Source: Thalia democratica (lineage: Eukaryota). From it: DNA of 64,000 bases. A model generated the notes under the pieces. That model ran no database searches and was not told the DNA's origin. It saw only the letters and a program-made list of their open reading frames with translations. The translations under genes were made by a program, and so were the position numbers. Location: assembly GCA_965202585.1 (NCBI GenBank), contig OZ241829.1, positions 14,818,001 through 14,882,000 of the forward strand. The letters run 5' to 3'. Below, in pieces: positions 4,021 through 61,250 of the stretch; position 1 is the first letter of the stretch; the number at the start of each line of letters is the position of its first letter.

Positions 4021-5430
4021 AGTTTTACAGAAAACCTGATTAAAAATGAGGACAAGCTAATACTTCAAATTAAAACTAACAAGGTTTTATTAGATGAAGT
4101 TGAAGAAAAAAGGATTTCCAAGTTCGCAAATAAAAAGTAAAATGCAAACAACAGTGTGGTTTGTTATTACTTATCAAAGAATTTCAAGCTTTTAAACTTG
4201 AATGAAAGTTCCATGAACTTCGTGGAGAGCTGCTTTCCAATAGTTGCTGAGTCGGACTACTTTTTAGAACTTGATTTCAACTTCATCAAAAAATTATTAT
4301 CGAGCAGCGGATTGAGCGTAGACACGGAAGTGCAAGTATTCAATGCAGCAAACAGGTGGATTAACTATGATGTAACAGAGCGTAGCAAACAAGTGGTACA
4401 CCTCCTGTCTAAAGTTCGACTTCAGCTTCTATCAGCTCCAGCTTTAGCCTATCTCCGAATTGCTTGCAGAGCGTCATCTTTTAGCATTGATGGTAATGAA
4501 TGCACTGAGGTTATTAAAACAGTTTTATTGGACAAGAAACATTCAACCACAACAAATGGCGACGTTAAAACCAGATATTGCAACCAAACTAGTTTTAACA
4601 TAGTTGTTTGTGGAGGGCAAAATATAAATAAATTTAACACCGTTAGTGAAGTAAAACTTTTAAAGAATACCAACTTTCGTGGAATGAAGTATTTGCGGCG
4701 AATGAAAATAGCCCGAGAAAATTTTGGAGCAGTTTGTGTTAAAGGTGAAGTTTATGTGTTTGGTGGAATTGATCTTCATTTAAATTGCATAATGCCAGTT
4801 GAAAAATACTCCCCTCTTACCAACACTTAGGAACACATATCTAACATGTATGATGGTTGTATTTATTTTTCCACTTGTTCTTTTATGGAAAGTGTTTATA
4901 TTGTTGGCGGATCTATTAGTTTTTCATCTACAGCTACGAGTGTTAAATTTAGTACAAAAACCTATGAATGGGAAGAAATCGCCAATATGAACGATGCAAG
5001 AAAGTTTTCAGCTAGTTCCGTATTTGAAGGAAGAATTATCGTATCTGGTGGACGGAATGGTAATGTAACACTAAACAATGTAGAAGCATATGATCATGCA
5101 GCTCATACATGGTCATGAATGCCGGACATGATTGAAAGAAGATACCATCACAAATCAGTTGCAGTAAAAAACAAACTGTTTCAAATTGGTGGTTTAAACA
5201 ACTGTGAAGTTTATGATTCCAATACTGAAGTGTTTACTTTGTTGATAGAACATGAATAAAATATTTTTAGCATGTTTAGCAATGCTATCGAAGCGATCAC
5301 AGTTGGTAGCAAGTTATTTGTTTTTTGCCACGGAGGTAAAGTTATGGTTTACGACTTTGAAATCGATGAATGGTCAGAAAAAAGCTGTTATGCAACAAGA
5401 AATATTGCGAAGTTTTCCTGCGTAAATTAA
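4021..5430 (+). pseudogene. Intronless BACK-Kelch (kelch-like) pseudogene
   Basis: One reading frame gives a BACK region (YFLELDF...VFNAANRWINYD.ERS..LLSKVRLQLL) and Kelch repeats (VYVFGG..VEKYSP, VYIVGG, IIVSGG..VEAYD, LFQIGG..CEVYD). In-frame stops at 4138, 4828, 5116 and 5257; terminal TAA at 5428-5430. Confidence 0.85.
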
Positions 5431-22059: not shown

Positions 22060-23120
22060 GGGAACGGGTCAGAAAAGCACGGCGTCACCTTTGCATGGAG
22101 TGACACTTTAGCATGGAGTGATATTTTAGCACAGAGTGACACTTTTGCACAGAGAGACACTTTAGCACGGAGTGACACTGTCACACTTTATCACAGATTT
22201 ATTTTTTGCAATTATATTTTTCTGTGCTTTAACAAAATGTGTACTAATACGTTTAAAATTAATAAAGTGAATTATCAAAAACTAAAAGTTAACAAGCTTT
22301 AAATGTGTAACAAATTTAGGCTTAAACTAAAACTAAAGTAAAAGTAAACTTCAAAATTTTACCAACTGTTTTTCTATAGAACTTTTAAAGAAAATATTTT
22401 GGTACTTGTAGTTTCATATTTTCGACCAAAAACTATTTTTATAAACTAAGCAATATAGGCAAACTCTAGGTTTCTTAAAACTTTTTTACAAAACTTAAAT
22501 TAGTTTTGTTAGTTTTTTAATTTAAGCGTAAATTTTAAACAAAGGATGAGATATATAAGGATTAATTGATATTTATATACCATTTTCCTTTGTTTTTTAA
22601 AAACTCTGTTAACTTATTTCTACAGGCGTGCGTCTCGCATTTTTTTAATACTTTACTGTGTGTTATAAAAACTATGTAAAGACTACTTTAATGGTAATTA
22701 ACTTTAATCAAAAAATTGTTCTCCTTTTATAGCTTTATAGCTTTATTATTACTTTTATTGTTTTAACAGTTTAAGAAACAGCTCAATTTAAAAACCTACT
22801 AGTATAAAATTTTCTAGAGAATTTTGTTATCATGATATACTTGAAAGTGTTAGAACTAGTTTTTGTATTTTTTGTTTGTTAACTTAATGTTTAATGAGGA
22901 GTTGAGCATCATTTAAATAAACACCTTAAAAGATCTAAAATTATTCCGTGCTTAAATGACACTCCGTGCTAAACTGTCACCCGTTGTAAGTGTCACTCTA
23001 TGCTAAAGTGACGCCTTATTAAAGTGACAATCCGTGATAAAGTGACACTCCGTGCTAAAGTGAAACCGTGCTAAAGTGACACCGTGCTCAAGTGACGCTG
23101 TGCTTTTCTGACACCTACCC
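22060..23120. mobile_element. MULE/Foldback-like MITE in an ETS-gene intron
   Basis: TIRs GGGAACGGGTCAGAAAAGCACGGCGTCAC / GGGTAGGTGTCAGAAAAGCACAGCGTCAC, 9-bp TSD AATTAAAAG / AATTTAAAG, and arrays of ~17-bp GAGTGACACTTTAGCAC repeats inverted at the two ends. Confidence 0.85.
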
Positions 23121-29339: not shown

Positions 29340-29762
29340 ACACAAAAGTTGTTGAAAAAAAATCTCTACGAATTGATAACAACTCTTTTGAATTTGTGTT
29401 AACTAAAACTGTTCAAATACAATCTGTAGAGACTGATAATAACTCTTTTGATTTTGTGTTAAATGATGTTGTTGAAATACAATCTGTAAGTACTGCTAAT
29501 AACTGTTTTGATTTGTGTAAAACTGTAAAATAAAGTTGTTGAAAAAAATCTGTAGGGACTGATAACAACTCTTTTGATTTTTTGTTAAATAAATTTGTTG
29601 ATAAATCTGTAGAGACTGATAATAACTCTTTTTATTTTGTGTAAAATAAATTTGTTGAAAAAAATATATAGAGACTGATAATAACTCTTTTGATTTTGTG
29701 TTAAATAAAGTTGCTGAAATACAATCTGTAAATACTGATAATAACTTTTTCAATTTTTTGTT
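29340..29762 (+). repeat. 60-bp minisatellite (~7 copies) encoding a 20-aa repeat
   Basis: Unit ~AAATAAAGTTGTTGAAATACAATCTGTAGAGACTGATAATAACTCTTTTGATTTTGTGTT translates as (N)KVVEIQSVETDNNSFDFVL. Confidence 0.85.
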
Positions 29763-29869
29763 ATATAGAAATTTTACATGAAAAGAAAAACTTAATAACA
29801 ATAAACTATATGTTAATACTGATGCTGCTAGTAGCTTTACTAAATTCATTGACCTGCAAGGAATAACAA

Positions 29870-45357: not shown

Positions 45358-46107
45358 CAGTAATCTCTCGCTTATTTACGCACATTGTGTCCACAGAAAA
45401 AGTTTGAAAGATATGAGAGATGGTAAAGATACGAGAGGTACCAAATATACTTACTACAATGGCTGTATTTTTATTTTGCTTCTAGTTAAAAGCAGACTGG
45501 GGACTTTCCCACTTTTAACAATTTGTTTACTTTATTTATAAATATGAAATCAAAATATAAAACTCTACATATTTAAAAAAAAAGATTTAAATTTATATAA
45601 AATAATAATACTTATAGAAAAGTTTTACTAATTTTAACAATAAGTAGATTTTAATTTTATCTTTATTTATATGTGACTTTTTTAATAATTAACATTTATA
45701 ATCTACTACTTAGCAAATTCAATTTATAATTAAACAGTTGTTTACAATTAAGAAATAGTGTCTATATATATCTATGTTAACATTTTAAACTCTCATTATT
45801 TTATTATACTTTCATTATTTACACAGTTATATTACTTTCCAAAATTTAATTTAATATCTTATTGTTAACAAAATTTCTGATATACTGAGGTATACTAAAT
45901 GTTTATCAATTAGTCAAGGAACATAATTTAACAAATTTTAAAAATATAGAGAGGTGAGTTAACATTTAAAAACATATTTTAAATTGAAAATATACAATAA
46001 ACCTAATTTGTGCAATATTAAAATAAATTTAAATTTTTATATTTTGAATTTTGGAATTCTAAAATGCGTAACTAAACGAGAGTGCGTAAAGATGCGAGAG
46101 GTTACTG
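45358..46107. mobile_element. Tc1/mariner (pogo/Tigger-like) MITE
   Basis: 26-bp TIRs CAGTAATCTCTCGCTTATTTACGCAC / CAGTAACCTCTCGCATCTTTACGCAC flanked by TA on both sides. Confidence 0.85.
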
Positions 46108-46734
46108 TAGCAGATAAGTTAAAAAGCTTTAAATAAGATCAACATGTAAAAAATAATTTTCTTCTGGTACGACTTTAAACTATATTAGTTTATATATTTT
46201 TGTTTGAAAAACTTATATTTTTAACTAAGTCAAAATAAAATAGATATTCAATTTTGGAAGAGGTTTAATACAAAGAGGATCTCAAAAAGAATATTTTTGT
46301 AGTGTAAATATGCTGTTATAAAACAGAAAAGCATACATGAATCAACTGCAGAAGTTTAAGTATCTCAATGGGCTGTTGGGTGGAAATTTATTTTTTTGTG
46401 ACTAAATATAAACTAAGTTTTTTGTTATATTTGGTAGAGCTTAGCTCTTCATTTCGTAACTATTTGCTTTTAAAAGTATTCTAGGAGTAAAAATTAAATT
46501 TGTAATGCTTATTTTTTCTTTTCTTTTTTGTAAAAAATACTGAAAATGCTACATGTTTAATGTCAAAACTAAGGTATTCGACAACTACATAAAGATACCT
46601 GAATTAATCATACATGATTATTCTTTATACCAGCTCTATCTTTTTGGCTTTCTGTTTTTGGAAATATTGAGTTGTGAGTATTTTTTTGTAATTAATTTTT
46701 ACTTTTATAAAAATTAAGGGTTTTTACAAAATTT

Positions 46735-46952
46735 CAGGATGTACTCAAGAAAAGAACAAGTCACTTTTGAACAAATTGTCACTTTCACAAAAGTGGTAAC
46801 ATTTGCACAAGGTTAGAGTTAGGGTCTGGCTTAGGGTCATAGTTAAAGGTTAAAGCTAGGGTCCTTGTAATGTGAATGTGCAAATATTACTGCTTATGGA
46901 AAATAACCCTTTGTACAAAAGTGTGCCTTTGAGTAAAAATGACGACCTACCC
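46735..46952. mobile_element. Small degenerate MITE with 17-bp GTCACTTT repeats and TTAGGG-like core
   Basis: GTCACTTTTGAACAAATTGTCACTTTCACAA repeats, core GGTTAGAGTTAGGG..TTAGGG..GCTAGGG, and right end ..GACCTACCC resembling the 23120 terminus. Confidence 0.5.
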
Positions 46953-48729
46953 ATTAAGGACATATAGCTCTACAACTAAGCATCCCCATATTACATCTTT
47001 GTTTATAAGTACACAAGATAAGTTAAAAAAAAGTATAGTGAATAGTGTCTTTTGAACAACCAACTTTAAGGTTCTTGTAAAGCAATATCTTAATTTTTTA
47101 ATGTCTATTAATTTAATTTCAATTTTTTAAGCAACTTGAACAATAATTTTCTATAAAAACTATATCAAACTAGAGAAAACCATAATAAAAAACAAATTAC
47201 AGGTGTCTGTGTCTGAATTTTTTTGTTAGCTAGCAAACCATTTTTAGATATAACTTATAGATAATTTTGAGTAAGTTGAACTGACCATCTACAAAATTCA
47301 ACAACTTATGAAATTCTTAAAAATAAAATATAAAATATAATTTTCAAAGGACCTCATTTATGAACCATTCAACTAATTTTATTATAGTTTTATTGCTATG
47401 TCAAATCAAAAATGTCAATATCTGCATTAACCCACTTTCTCAGCTCACTGTGCAACACCATCAATGTATTTACTTCAGCTTAGTTATTAGTACAGTGTTT
47501 CAGCCTTTTATTAAGTAAAAAGTCCAGCTTGAGTCGGCCCAAGTTGGTTAAAAAATCAAAAAATTTTTTGAGTTAAATACTTTAGCTACTTTTTGACCTA
47601 GATATAAACTTTAGAATAATTAAAATACAAAATTTTATACACTTATTGGATAAATTTAACTTTATACATATGATGATCTATCAGTTATTAAAACTAAATC
47701 AATTAAACTTTTATAAAATAAAATGTAATTATATAATAAAGTTATTAAATATTACTAAGTTACAGTGGGACAACAACTCACATACAGATATATTTCAAGT
47801 TTATTTACTTATACTTTATCATGTGTGAACAGCATTCCATAGTAGGTACTTCATATTGTTGAGTGCAAGGAAATAAAGTGAGCAAAGAATGTTTAAGAAC
47901 TTTGTGAAGATGTTTCCAATTTTTTATTAAACTTTATAAGTAGGAGAAAAGGGTTTTTTGGTCATCCAATTTAAACCAGGGTTGAACTTACGATACTTTA
48001 ATCCGTTTGTAGTACACTTGTAGTGATTACAAATAAAATTTTCATAATGAAAAATTAAGAAATTTATAAAACTAACTTTAAACTAATAAAACACAAGAAA
48101 ACGTTTAGATAAAATTATAAAAATATTTCAAATTTGTAAGATTATTGTTTGTTTTACTATGGTTTTATTAGAAAAACTTATCGTATGGCTTAACAGAAAT
48201 TTAGAAACTAGTGTTACTTTTGTTTTAAAAATACATTATAAACTACTGGAAGGTTTAAAACGCTTATAGGTTATTTAAATGCTAATTTGTACTTTTTAGC
48301 AAAAGGTAGTCTTATAAATAAAAGACATGTTTTGGTTATATTAATATTTTCATGGTGTAAAACTCAACACTAACCATTGTACAAGCAATATTACAAGAAT
48401 TTTTTTTTAATGTATAGTAACTTTTACATTTTAATATAGACTAATCTTAAAATAGTTTTTTTATCTGAAATAGTTAATATTCTATTAGCTTCAAAGTTAT
48501 AAGGTTTTTCTTTTATTTAGATATTATAGAAAAACAAAAACTTTTATTTAACATTTACAAATTAAAAACAAGACACTTAAAAACTAAAAATAGTAGTTTA
48601 TTAATAAAATCAACAAAATCGGCGAAAGTCTGCAGAACAAGTCCGGACTTTCGTTTGCCGTGAGACAAGCTCAAATTTAACAAAAGGGTTGATCATGCCA
48701 ATTCGATCATCAGACCACAAGTTTCGGTA

Positions 48730-48772
48730 GACTGAGACCGGTTTCGTCCTTATTAGGACTCATCAGTCAGTC
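48730..48772 (-). ncRNA. Type I hammerhead ribozyme
   Basis: Minus strand reads GACUGA-CUGAUGA-GUCC-UAAUAA-GGAC-GAAA-C-CG-G-UC/UCAGUC. Confidence 0.9.
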
Positions 48773-49057
48773 ACAACCGAAAAACTTGTAGTCGTCAATC
48801 TACAAACGGTTTATCATGCTTTCGCATGAAGCTACCATTTGCTGGCAATGATTAGTGACGTCAGCATTGTCTTTGCCGTGCAACGTTTAAAACATTGTCC
48901 ACTAGGCAAGACATCTGGTACGCTCGTTTTAGTACAATCAACAAAATCGGCGAAAGTCTGCAGAACAAGTCCGGACTTTCGTTTGCCGTGAGACAAGCTC
49001 AAATTTAACAAAAGGGTTGATCATGCCAATTCGATCATCAGACCACAAGTTTCGGTA

Positions 49058-49100
49058 GACTGAGACCGGTTTCGTCCTTATTAGGACTCATCAGTCAGTC
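49058..49100 (-). ncRNA. Type I hammerhead ribozyme
   Basis: Identical copy, +328 bp. Confidence 0.9.
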
Positions 49101-49385
49101 ACAACCGAAAAACTTGTAGTCGTCAATCTACAAACGGTTTATCATGCTTTCGCATGAAGCTACCATTTGCTGGCAATGATTAGTGACGTCAGCATTGTCT
49201 TTGCCGTGCAACGTTTAAAACATTGTCCACTAGGCAAGACATCTGGTACGCTCGTTTTAGTACAATCAACAAAATCGGCGAAAGTCTGCAGAACAAGTCC
49301 GGACTTTCGTTTGCCGTGAGACAAGCTCAAATTTAACAAAAGGGTTGATCATGCCAATTCGATCATCAGACCACAAGTTTCGGTA

Positions 49386-49428
49386 GACTGAGACCGGTTT
49401 CGTCCTTATTAGGACTCATCAGTCAGTC
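49386..49428 (-). ncRNA. Type I hammerhead ribozyme
   Basis: Identical copy, +656 bp. Confidence 0.9.
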
Positions 49429-49713
49429 ACAACCGAAAAACTTGTAGTCGTCAATCTACAAACGGTTTATCATGCTTTCGCATGAAGCTACCATTTGCTG
49501 GCAATGATTAGTGACGTCAGCATTGTCTTTGCCGTGCAACGTTTAAAACATTGTCCACTAGGCAAGACATCTGGTACGCTCGTTTTAGTACAATCAACAA
49601 AATCGGCGAAAGTCTGCAGAACAAGTCCGGACTTTCGTTTGCCGTGAGACAAGCTCAAATTTAACAAAAGGGTTGATCATGCCAATTCGATCATCAGACC
49701 ACAAGTTTCGGTA

Positions 49714-49756
49714 GACTGAGACCGGTTTCGTCCTTATTAGGACTCATCAGTCAGTC
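49714..49756 (-). ncRNA. Type I hammerhead ribozyme
   Basis: Identical copy, +984 bp. Confidence 0.9.
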
Positions 49757-50227
49757 ACAACCGAAAAACTTGTAGTCGTCAATCTACAAACGGTTTATCA
49801 TGCTTTCGCATGAAGCTACCATTTGCTGGCAATGATTAGTGACGTCAGCATTGTCTTTGCCGTGCAACGTTTAAAACATTGTCCACTAGGCAAGACATCT
49901 GGTACGCTCGTTTTAGTACAATCAACAAAATCGGCGAAAGTCTGCAGAACAAGTCCGGACTTTCGTTTGCCGTGAGACAAGCTCAAATTTAACAAAAGGG
50001 TTGATCATGCCAATTCGATCATCAGACCACAAGTTTCGGTAGACTGAGGCCGATTTTGTTGATTGTACTAAAACGAGCGTACCAGATGTCTTGCCTAGTG
50101 GACAATGTTTTAAACGTTGCACGGCAAAGACAATGCTGACGTCACTAATCATTGCCAGCAAATGGTAGCTTCATGCGAAAGCATGATAAACCGTTTGTAG
50201 ATTGACGACTACAAGTTTTTCGGTTGT

Positions 50228-50270
50228 GACTGACTGATGAGTCCTAATAAGGACGAAACCGGTCTCAGTC
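50228..50270 (+). ncRNA. Type I hammerhead ribozyme
   Basis: Stem I GACUGA/UCAGUC, core CUGAUGA (50234-50240), stem II GUCC/GGAC, GAAA, minimal palindromic stem III ACCGGU; predicted cleavage after GUC at 50264. Confidence 0.92.
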
Positions 50271-50555
50271 TACCGAAACTTGTGGTCTGATGATCGAATT
50301 GGCATGATCAACCCTTTTGTTAAATTTGAGCTTGTCTCACGGCAAACGAAAGTCCGGACTTGTTCTGCAGACTTTCGCCGATTTTGTTGATTGTACTAAA
50401 ACGAGCGTACCAGATGTCTTGCCTAGTGGACAATGTTTTAAACGTTGCACGGCAAAGACAATGCTGACGTCACTAATCATTGCCAGCAAATGGTAGCTTC
50501 ATGCGAAAGCATGATAAACCGTTTGTAGATTGACGACTACAAGTTTTTCGGTTGT

Positions 50556-50598
50556 GACTGACTGATGAGTCCTAATAAGGACGAAACCGGTCTCAGTC
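50556..50598 (+). ncRNA. Type I hammerhead ribozyme
   Basis: Identical copy, +328 bp; predicted cleavage after 50592. Confidence 0.92.
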
Positions 50599-51881
50599 TA
50601 CCGAAACTTGTGGTCTTTATTAATAAAAGTAACAAATATAAATTACTTAAAAATGAATTAAACTTCATTACAATAATTTGAAACCGAAACGATGAATGTT
50701 AAGTTCTTCTCTGTATCTGTTATCAGAAATAAAGGTTTTTAAAGTTGATAAATCTAGTATTTATGTGAACTGCTTCTATTGTAAAGTATGTATACAAGTA
50801 TATTTTGAATGTTGTACTACTCTTAAAAAACTTTGAACTAATAAAACTTTCTGGAAAAATAGAAATTCAGAAATATACTTATGCTTATGTCGAAATGCTA
50901 TACAACCAGAATAGAAAAATAATTACGACATTCACTTTTTTGAAACAATCTGAAAAACATCAAGACGGCTTTATTCACAAATAACGAAAAGTATAGAGAA
51001 TAAAACTGGAATTTTCAACAAAGTATTTATATTAACAAATTATTAAGTACTTTTCTATTTTACTTATTTTAAAGTTAAAAAAAATTGCTTAAGTTTTCCA
51101 ACTACAAAGTAAAGTTTGTAATGATACCATCATACACTTTTTTTGTATGTTTGACATATACATTGATCATAGTGGCAGCTGATTATTTTAGAAACTTTTT
51201 TCAGGTTCTTTTACAGTTTCCTTGTTTCTTGTTAGTAGCAAATTAAAAATAAGGTTAAAACTGTATTATAGTTACTGAAAAGATTCTGTAGTACTACTTT
51301 TTTGTGTTAAAAAGTAAACAAAGTTTTACAAAATTAAAACCTTTTAATGAACGAAGTTGAGATAGTTTTCATTTTATCTGAAAGAGTACGGATAGATGAT
51401 TTCTAGAATTATGTGTCTTTTTCTATTTAAAATTTATCAATATTATGATGAACTTATTTTATAAAACCTACTTTAATAGCAAAAACAAATTGTGTGAAAC
51501 TGGTTAACAGCATTCACTGTACATTGGAGGCTAACACGAAGTTGATGTGAAAAAATAAAAAAACTTTATAAAATCCTTTCGCAGGTCGATGAAACTCTTT
51601 TGCAAGCCGCTGCCAGAAGAGAAACTTTCAAGCGACCTCCTAGAGACCTAGATGTTCCTTTCTTAATAAAATCGAGTCGAGGCTAAGATCAGAGATCTAC
51701 ACTGACAGTAGAGAAGTTACTGCAACAATACGGATTATTTTTGCTCATTCATTGACCTTAAAAGCGAATTTTTATTAACTTTTGAAATGTTTTACTCAAG
51801 TAGACGGGGATATTTATTTAAAATGTAAGCGGTAGAAGTATTTCGTTCCATCTGTAGTTAAACATGCCCGCTACGAGAACC

Positions 51882-55876: not shown

Positions 55877-58204
55877 TTAGAATATTAAATTCTTCATTTC
55901 ACACAAACCATGGAAATCAGCTCCATTGGAAGTCACTCCGCAGTCAACATCATTGAGTTTACCATATTTCATCCAAAAATGCACGCAGTCTTCATTACCT
56001 CCATAATTGTTTGGTTCACCCGATTTGAAATAGTACAAAAAGGGTTGGTCTTCGATTACATTCACTGTCTGCCCATTCACATATCTGAAAAATCCTTCGG
56101 TTTGGCGATCCGTTATTCCAACCCAGACGTTTTTTCCTGACGACTCTACCATTTTTCGGATTTTCCTTTGTTAAAATACAAATTGTTTAAAAACATATGT
56201 GACATAAAAAACTTTTTGAGGCTTTTTTTAATGAAAAAAACTACTAAATTACATTAATTGTTTTTATTTCGACTAGTTTTTTTATATTTTTTAGATTATT
56301 TAAATTTTTTTGACTAATTTATTACACTAATTTATAGCACAAAGAATTAATATACGTAGCTCATTTGTTAATTAACAAATACATTTTTGATATAATGAAT
56401 ATTTATCATCAAACTTAAATTAAGTTGTTTAATATTTAGAAATACCAAAAATCTCTTTATTTTACTAGGTTAATCTAAAGGTAATTCTCAACTAACGAAT
56501 GATACTTAATACCATTTTCACCAAAACTCTCATGTATTAAATCACCGCCCATAGCTTGACATTGCTTGCGACACTCTTCAAAGGTTCCTCTGTATGGTGT
56601 TATCTTGAATGTGTAGTCAAAAGCTGTTTTGAAAAATTGCGAGTTGAAATTAAATCTAAGAACATTTTTTAGTATGAGTATAAGAAGTACATGTTAGACA
56701 TTCTTGTGGAAAAAAATGTTACCTCATTAATGAATATTATAAATTATTTTAAAATATCTTCAAAAAAAGTGGTTTAACGTAAAATTTGTAGTCTTATACA
56801 TTTGTTAATCCACTTATAAGTATAAAATATAAGTGAAAATAATAAGATTGTTTTTATAGAAACTTTCTAACAAGTTTCATTTAGTATTGCTACGATTTTC
56901 TCAACAGTATGCTCCAATGTCGAAATTTGCTTATTCAGCATTTCTATTATGGGTATGACGTCACAATTAGCATCTAAACCTCCTTTTTCACCTGAAAGTA
57001 AGTTATGTATATATTGCTATAGTATTAAATTAACAAACAGGTTTTTGCTTTGGTTTATAACTATAAGTTTCAACTTAACTTTGGCAACGGTTTTTGTCGG
57101 CAAGCAATGTGTAGAAAAAATTATTTCTTATTAGGTCTATGAATTTCAATAACTGTTAATTTACAAAAATTACTTAAATATCTATTTCATTTCAAAAATA
57201 CTATATTTATATATGACTTTTTTTCTATTATACCTAGTTTAAACCTCAAATCACCCATTAAATATGCCTATTGTCTCTTTCATTATTGTGTTTTTTAATC
57301 CCAGATTACCTAGCTTAAATTTAAAAGTTTAGTTTAGCGGGCTAGATTCAAATACTTGCAAAGGCATTATTTACTTTAACGGGCCATATTCCACTAACGT
57401 TTTTTAACTGCGTTCTTCATTTTCTGGTGCACGACAACTCAAATTTGGACAGTTCAAATTCCGCCAATTTTAATCGACCTTAACTAAAAAAGTAATGTGT
57501 ATGTTTTAAAAATAAAATATTTTTGTATAAGTAGTGTTAAGATCTACAGGCAATGGTTTTATTATTGAAAAGTTTTAAGTATTTTTTGAGATATATCTAA
57601 AATAAGCATAAAAATATAGTTATTTATAGTAGTTTAATAATATCTTAAGAAATGTTTAAAATTTTGTGAAAAAGAAAAAAACTGCCTGTAGATATTAATA
57701 GCTTTTGAGATATGATTTTTAAACATTTTTTAAGGATTTGAGTTGTCGGAATTTAAATTGTCGGAATTAGAATTGTCATTTAAACGTCATTTTCGCATCT
57801 GGCCCACGAGTCGTATGTTGCCCACCCCTAGGTTAGACCAAATATCTAGAGTTAATTTTTCTTTTTGAAGCAACCGTTTATAAAAAATAGTTTAGTTTAT
57901 TCATAAATCATTTAAAACAAATTAATAAAAACAACTACTTGAAGTTTTGATAAAAAAATCTTTGTTAGAAATAAGATACATATTTAATGCTTAAAGATAA
58001 TAGAAATATATTTTTATCCAAAAAATTAAATACATTTACAAAGTTAAACAAAAGTATAAAACCTTCAGGGTTATTAGTATTTGTGGTATTGTTGCAAAAA
58101 AGTTTTCTAGCTGCAGCAAGTGTTGATTTGTCATCATCGTAAGTTGTTATTTCACTTACAACCACGTGAAAGTAAATTATGAAAATTGGAAACAAGAGCT
58201 TCAT
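55877..58204 (-). CDS. Secreted C-type lectin domain protein (185 aa, 3 exons: 58204-58063, 56623-56497, 56165-55877)
   Basis: Signal peptide MKLLFPIFIIYFHVVVS. Phase-compatible GT-AG joins give TFEECRKQCQAMGGDL...VWVGITDR..EGFFRY...GEPNNYGGNEDCVHFW..GKLNDVDC...GLCE*, with an EPN sugar-binding motif and no stops. Confidence 0.9.
57335..57830. mobile_element. Degenerate hAT-like MITE end with a nested TTCCGACAA subterminal-repeat element
   Basis: Right end TGGCCCACGAG..GTTGCCCACCCCTA at 57830; inverted arrays GACAACTCAAAT.. (57434) and ..GAGTTGTCGGAATTTAAATTGTCGG (57740-57778). Confidence 0.45.
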
Positions 58205-61012: not shown

Positions 61013-61250
61013 TAGTGATAAACCGGACTCCCTATCCGGGTCCGGCCGGATATTGCCATTTTTGTCTGATGTCCGGATCCGGCCGGATTCTAATTTGAAA
61101 GAAAGTCCAGATCCGGTTCCGGCCGGATTCTAATTAAAAAAAAAAAAGTCCGGGTCCGGTTCCGGCCGGATTCTAATTTGAAAAAAAAATCCGGATCCGG
61201 GTCCGGCCGGATCCTAACAGAGATCCGGCTGGACCCGGATCTAGTTAGTA
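61013..61250 (+). repeat. CpG-rich ~40-bp repeat island (CCGGATCCGG.TCCGGCCGGATTCTAAT), probable solo hAT-type terminus
   Basis: Four to five copies of the TCCGGCCGGAT core following TAGTGATAAACCGG. Confidence 0.65.

Follow-up and report, generated by a model that had tools for sequence, protein, structure and literature searches.

A young hammerhead retrozyme of Thalia democratica with insertion scars that match those of Penelope-like elements

In a 64,000-nt stretch of contig OZ241829.1 from Thalia democratica (assembly GCA_965202585.1, positions 14,818,001 to 14,882,000 of the forward strand; here called the window, and all positions are given in its own numbering) a 328-bp unit with a hammerhead ribozyme is repeated in tandem at 48610-50615. 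The insertion comprises 6.1 units, which do not differ from each other at any position. A first-pass annotation, made from the letters alone, had described it as a single direct array. Tandem Repeats Finder supports the period (48601-50056, 328 bp, 4.4 copies, 99% matches), yet the single orientation could not be upheld. The insertion is made up of two opposed arms that meet head-to-head between 50048 and 50049. Arm 1 (48610-50048) contains 4.39 units with the ribozyme sense on the minus strand, arm 2 (50049-50615) has 1.73 units with the sense on the plus strand. The whole insertion is bounded on both sides by TTTATTAATAAAA, a perfect direct repeat of 13 bp, at 48597-48609 and 50616-50628. 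It is the target-site duplication; the last two nucleotides of its left copy (AA) and the first T of its right copy can equally be assigned to the element.

The sense 3' end of arm 1 lies at unit 126-128 (start site B) against the left flank, which is typical of the family. Its sense 5' end is C328 at 50048, one nucleotide upstream of the ribozyme cleavage site. There it is joined bluntly, without filler, to G113, the 5' end of arm 2, which runs to unit 23/24 at the right flank. A 'tail' corresponding to unit 55-126/128 is found at the left end of the insertion only (48610-48681, minus strand); it is defined by the two clusters, near units 54 and 128, in which the ends of the family fall. The segments 48712-50048 and 50049-50615 make a perfect 567-bp inverted repeat without spacer. 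An Rfam match to MIR6440 at 49888-50096 arises spuriously from the inversion palindrome at the arm junction.

Six hammerheads were recognized. Four are on the minus strand, at 48714-48784, 49042-49112, 49370-49440 and 49698-49768, with predicted cuts between 48736 (C17) and 48735, 49064 and 49063, 49392 and 49391, and 49720 and 49719, respectively. Two are on the plus strand, at 50216-50286 and 50544-50614, with predicted cuts between 50264 and 50265 and between 50592 and 50593. Each matches Rfam RF02275 (HH9) with 38.8 bits and an E value of 9.5e-8. The gathering score of HH9 is 52 bits; at this threshold Rfam yields no match in the insertion, and the six appear only under an E-value threshold. 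They stay below the gathering score because the loop of helix III is missing. The six type I hammerheads with intact core that the first-pass annotation had read by eye, and for which it had proposed an Rfam scan, were thus recovered by E value, and none of them by gathering score.

The catalytic core (CUGAUGA, GAAA, GUC) is indeed intact in all six. Helix I is GACUGA/UCAGUC (6 bp), followed by an internal loop with UAC on its 3' side, as in the HH9 consensus, and then by a further long stem. Helix II is GUCCU/AGGAC (5 bp), closed by AAUA. Helix III is the minimal palindrome ACCGGU alone, as annotated before. Since it is unable to fold back on itself, pairing of two ribozymes would be required. 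A short palindromic helix III that implies action as a dimer is the arrangement in most metazoan type I hammerheads (PMC4209133). When two ribozyme segments were folded together, an extended duplex resulted instead of a helix III dimer; this outcome was set aside, the energy model being unable to judge a catalytic fold. A full-text search of papers with the ribozyme sequence gave no match. An identical 33-nt ribozyme core (helix II, GAAAC, CCGGTC) was seen at 192-224 of Ga0164294_10174981, the one contig with a hammerhead core in a scan of Joint Genome Institute metagenomes; this contig is otherwise unrelated and AT-rich, and its helix I flanks differ and pair poorly.

As a whole, the unit is strongly folded. 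Against shuffled sequences the predicted fold has a z value of -6.2, with 68% of the bases paired. The long helix that extends stem I and the GNRA-capped hairpin UCAUGC-GAAA-GCAUGA, both pointed out in the first-pass annotation, are present and form in this fold; the hairpin occurs in every unit, e.g., at 50171-50186 on the plus strand. The G+C content is 43%, compared with 26% in the flanks. The longest reading frame found in a multimer of the unit has 62 codons, in line with the earlier statement that the unit holds no useful open reading frame (ORF). Two short motifs might be internal promoter elements. One is a perfect palindrome, TGACGTCA, at unit 201-208 of every unit (e.g., 50137-50144 and 50465-50472), which we take to be the consensus cyclic AMP-response element; the other, TTGCCTAGTGG at unit 155-165, presumably resembles an A box of RNA polymerase III.

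The unit is not confined to this locus. In the 802 Mb of genome searched, a 41-nt stretch over the ribozyme has 650 exact copies and a 40-nt stretch from the unit body has 239, while reversed-pattern controls gave zero in both cases. BLAST with the unit, a genome-wide search that had also been suggested before, returned 2244 candidates. For comparison 40 separate insertions were taken. All 40 consist of the ORF-less repeat alone, and 36 have their own duplication of 10-17 bp; among the 34 oriented insertions it measures 13 bp at 14 loci and 14 bp at 13. The arrays adjoin the duplications directly, and both ends of the insertions are free of a poly(A) or simple-repeat tail; no search aimed at a primer binding site or a polypurine tract was made. 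The targets are AT-rich and show a dyad-like signature, AC(A)...TGT: in the oriented insertions AC or ACA tends to stand before the duplication, and TGT follows it directly in 12/34, where about 0.6 would be expected by our own estimate from the AT-rich base composition. The mean divergence between loci is 0.6%.

The family is a dispersed, very young mobile element and neither a satellite nor the pseudo-LTR (LTR, long terminal repeat) of a coding element. The low divergence, together with the identity of the units within the present copy, supports a non-autonomous retroelement that was active recently. On youth and on the non-autonomous retroelement the first-pass annotation is supported. Its own counter-scenario was that the unit is the pseudo-LTR of a protein-coding Penelope-like element (PLE) without independent mobility. 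In that case the ORF would have been lost at this site by deletion or recombination. Pseudo-LTRs of PLEs do carry hammerheads and form tandem and inverted structures (PMC8557442, PMC4209133). At all 40 loci, however, the 328-bp unit stands alone, the duplications lie directly at the repeat ends, and the units are near-identical between loci. This explanation is largely refuted, and we give it very little credence. Within the family, a junction of TTGTACAAT with GGTCTCAGTC recurs at no fewer than 13 loci among the 100 matches listed, e.g., at G000:C1:15792005-15792039. It is too uniform for a random flank and may mark a deletion derivative or a self-copying composite.

Two opposed arms are found in 27 of the 40 insertions, a single arm in the remaining 13. 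The inversion at our copy might be suspected to stem from faulty assembly, in which a chimeric or palindromic read took the place of a simple direct array. Perfect palindromes are known to cause assembly errors, and PLE structures trouble assemblies (PMC8557442). The two-armed layout recurs, however, at all those 27 loci with matching duplications on both sides, and here the duplication flanks both arms exactly. An artefact is therefore highly improbable.

The flank-side ends of the arms, i.e., their sense 3' ends, fall into two narrow clusters, near unit 128 (range 123-132) and near unit 54 (range 51-68). In 25 of the 27 two-armed insertions there is one end of each cluster (p about 3e-6, if the arms chose their start sites independently and at equal odds), which leaves a 74-nt extension (unit 55-128) at one end that is lacking at the other. 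Of the one-armed insertions, 11/13 end near 128 (123-132). In the energy-predicted fold the two start sites flank one closing stem, formed by unit 40-48 with 122-130. A common sequence motif at the start sites was considered and dropped; TTTTGTT occurs in both regions, out of register with the ends. Head-to-head arms built of tandem subrepeats are reminiscent of foldback elements, and a foldback-type DNA transposon with the arms as terminal inverted repeats, or a satellite expanding by recombination, might be suspected. Against this, the outer ends differ in their unit position (~128 and ~54), the arms are unequal in length, one third of the insertions have one arm and yet the same duplication length, and the inner ends show 5'-truncation. 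An origin of this kind is hardly credible.

Such scars have a published counterpart. PLEs form partial tandems with an adjacent inverted, 5'-truncated copy and a tail that is frequently confined to one end (Craig et al. 2021, PMC8557442). When purified, a PLE enzyme was shown to cleave both strands and to extend them; it begins reverse transcription at two internal positions, which delimit the tail and lie downstream of the hammerhead cut (Frangieh et al. 2024, PMC11167929). A one-sided tail and two fixed internal start sites are reported to be exclusive to PLEs (PMC8557442, PMC11167929). The insertion scars of the retrozyme match these marks.

At the present locus, cleavage hit both strands of the target at a distance of 13 bp. 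From either free 3' end extends an arm of complementary DNA (cDNA) that starts inside the element, at unit 126-128 on the left and at unit 23/24 on the right, and runs through the 328-nt repeats. We consider it very probable that we are dealing with one recent retrotransposition of a non-coding hammerhead element, a 'non-LTR retrozyme', which was integrated in trans by the reverse transcriptase-endonuclease of a PLE. The element encodes nothing and would depend on this enzyme.

An inversion may also arise by twin priming, which is known for L1. A different reverse transcriptase, that of a long interspersed nuclear element (LINE) or of another non-LTR element, could thus have produced the inverted arms without any PLE, and the PLE loci that we sampled indeed offer no sequence link to the unit. 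Such an enzyme does not readily account for ends that are free of poly(A) and simple repeats, nor for fixed internal start sites and a one-sided tail, and the literature ties hammerheads of this kind to PLEs (PMC4209133; 10.64898/2026.07.22.740005). It is improbable, albeit somewhat less so than the artefact, the pseudo-LTR or the foldback element.

The template can be judged from a private variant. All 6.1 units of both arms have A at position 231, where 33/36 other loci have T. Because both arms share it, one event produced them from a single species of RNA, and the template was homogeneous over at least 4.4 units. Most simply, a 328-nt circle would have been read repeatedly; an uncleaved transcript of a homogeneous array is a possible alternative. 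The complete sequence of events may then be pictured as follows. An existing array would be transcribed, paired hammerheads would cut the multimeric RNA, and a ligase of the host would close the product to a circle. Both arms would finally be copied from this one RNA species, be it the circle, read in repeated passes, or a homogeneous multimer that had stayed uncleaved.

The inner ends of the arms are not random either. Of the 67 arms of the 40 loci, 10 have their start in unit 316-328, a stretch that makes up 4% of the unit, and the inner ends accumulate at unit 321-328. Genome-wide, 152 copies of the 22 nt after the cut site lack the base expected 13 nt upstream. Among the 100 listed of these, about three quarters are true breaks, which mostly start with GGTC, GTC or ACCGGTC. 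A control window at unit 150 gave 28 such copies, on roughly one third as many copies; a control pattern at unit 213 had been discarded, since it had zero matches and contained the private variant 231 within its anchor. Head-to-head junctions centred exactly on ACCGGT occur at 24 loci, versus one locus for a longer, 12-nt palindrome elsewhere in the unit. The cDNAs thus often stop or join at helix III. That the template is generally cut at the hammerhead before copying could not be maintained as a rule: most inner ends keep 1-7 nt upstream of the cut (C, TC, GTC, GGTC or ACCGGTC), so the template was uncut there when copied and the cDNAs ran past the site.

These junctions and inner ends invite a further speculation, which we regard as rather unlikely. 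The ACCGGU palindrome would not only pair the ribozymes but also be the preferred stop or join site of the double-primed cDNAs, so that an RNA dimer guides the resolution of the DNA; the arrays would result from a 328-nt circle being reverse-transcribed in rolling-circle fashion, with priming at the two fixed sites by a dimeric PLE enzyme.

The machinery that the retrozyme would require is present in the genome. A search for GIY-YIG domains yielded 568 candidates; in the frames examined, a reverse transcriptase domain (RVT_1, e.g., in L056) is followed by a C-terminal GIY-YIG domain, and many of them stand in head-to-head pairs. One abundant family (L056-L084) has this domain order and open frames of up to 918 amino acids, often as head-to-head pairs, e.g., at G000:C1:110353667 and 110355667 or at G000:C2:73105746 and 73108293; no hammerhead was detected within 1.4 kb downstream of its endonuclease. 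A protein 97% identical to this family is encoded on a marine metagenome contig (L085) of study PRJEB4352, which we take to be Tara Oceans.

Several observations weigh against an integration by a PLE enzyme, or at least do not fit it smoothly. Thirty PLE loci of 3.2 kb each, searched by BLAST, a hammerhead regular expression and Rfam, contained no hammerhead and no similarity to the unit, and the same holds for two near-full-length metagenome contigs of the abundant PLE family that had been found by protein search. The family sampled in this genome has no sequence similarity to the retrozyme. This partner search covered one PLE family, and of it the 3' halves only; the partner may simply have been missed. 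The published tail of PLEs measures 30-40 bp, versus 74 nt here. In vitro, the anole PLE shows no difference in start sites between the two strands (PMC11167929), whereas the two ends differ in 25/27 insertions of the retrozyme. At the present locus the right flank end, at unit 23/24, is atypical, the usual site being near 54. Finally, self-cleavage and a unit-length or circular RNA are predictions, the RNA data consisting of assembled contigs.

These contigs stem from marine metatranscriptomes and match the unit with 99-100% identity; RNA ends are not visible in contigs, and carry-over of DNA is possible. Some of them wrap around the end of the unit, with joints that go back 328 nt, and one bridges the cut site. 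The wrapping fits a tandem or circular RNA but is not proof of transcription. One run of the likely source organism displays a huge summed depth with many relatives at 90-95% identity. The depth peaks over the ribozyme core and roughly 90 nt after it, which suggests that this part is a module common to related families.

The unit was also traced in runs that bear different organism labels. Five differently labelled organisms (A-E; runs X7 and X8 are A, and X9, X10 and X12 are B, C and E) contain 73-94% of its 31-mers, while those of the 3-kb unique flank (45500-48500) appear only in organisms A (0.57-0.58) and D (0.21). Low coverage would be one explanation; the other is that species which have diverged in their unique DNA still share a near-identical retrozyme. 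The latter, if true, would suggest horizontal transfer or strong constraint.

The element is a member of the animal non-LTR retrozymes, a class that is already known (de la Pena, Ceprian and Cervera 2020, PMC7229834). It shares with them short tandem repeats of about 150-450 bp (here 328 bp), one type I hammerhead per unit, a G+C content below 45-50%, a highly self-paired unit, duplications of more than 4 bp and the lack of LTR and ORF. The published retrozymes are expressed in the form of both linear and circular RNA, whereas ours is known from DNA and from contigs of RNA libraries. Inverted arms, a tail and fixed start sites, all three present here, are not described in that paper. With PLEs, our element has in common the partial tandems, the adjacent inverted and 5'-truncated copy, the one-sided tail, the AT-rich targets, the two internal start sites downstream of the hammerhead cut and the priming of both strands (PMC8557442, PMC11167929); it differs from them in having no ORF. 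The hammerheads of PLE pseudo-LTRs and the canonical metazoan type I hammerheads likewise have a short palindrome as helix III and may occur as dual motifs, one on each strand and at a short distance (Cervera and de la Pena 2014, PMC4209133). The minimal PLE layout of that paper, however, has a helix II of 7-8 bp and a short helix I, while ours is canonical with a helix I of 6 bp, the UAC loop and a helix II of 5 bp.

The LTR retrozymes of plants are more distant. They, too, are non-autonomous, hammerhead-bounded units for which circular RNA is expected, but their hammerheads are of type III, they possess LTRs, a primer binding site and a polypurine tract, their duplications measure 4 bp, and Gypsy elements mobilize them (Cervera et al. 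2016, PMC4918200). The present element has a type I hammerhead, no LTR and a 13-bp duplication.

That animal retrozymes derive from PLEs and are their non-autonomous relatives was recently proposed in a preprint (Li, Clavereau and Pollet 2026, 10.64898/2026.07.22.740005). The proposal is based on co-occurrence and on a pseudo-LTR phylogeny in vertebrates; our evidence comes from the scars of insertion in a marine, AT-rich animal and includes no sequence link to any PLE. The scars are described neither in this preprint nor in PMC7229834, and they add independent support for the kinship of retrozymes and PLEs.

The remainder of the window may be mentioned briefly. An exon-like ORF with a C-type lectin domain (55880-56152, minus strand; Pfam Lectin_C, E 4e-10) lies 5.3 kb from the insertion. 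An ORF at 4156-4830 (plus strand) with BACK and Kelch domains (Pfam, E 5e-21) is probably an exon of a KLHL-type gene. Two arrays of 16-18-bp repeats in opposite orientation (AGCACGGAGTGACACTTT and its reverse complement), at 22076-22179 and 22945-23104 and about 770 bp apart, look like terminal inverted arrays of the foldback type or of a miniature inverted-repeat transposable element. A 60-bp tandem repeat in 7 copies occupies 29345-29773. At 61071-61217 there is a tandem repeat of 41-43 bp, in which GC-rich palindromic cores (TCCGGTTCCGGCCGGA) alternate with A runs.

As the class is known, the find itself is an ordinary one. Its value lies in the clean material: the family is young (about 0.6% divergence), the duplications are intact and the scars are fully legible. 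The scars are direct structural evidence, independent of any phylogeny, for the insertion of animal retrozymes by target-primed reverse transcription of the Penelope type: priming takes place at both DNA ends, copying starts at two fixed internal sites, and the stagger is 13-14 bp with AC(A)...TGT. The strict pairing of a tailed with an untailed end and the hot spot of junctions at the ribozyme palindrome are testable constraints on a poorly understood mechanism. For the host, the two-armed insertions create perfect inverted repeats of hundreds of base pairs. If transcription ran through them, long double-stranded RNA would result, from which small RNAs directed against the family might be derived.

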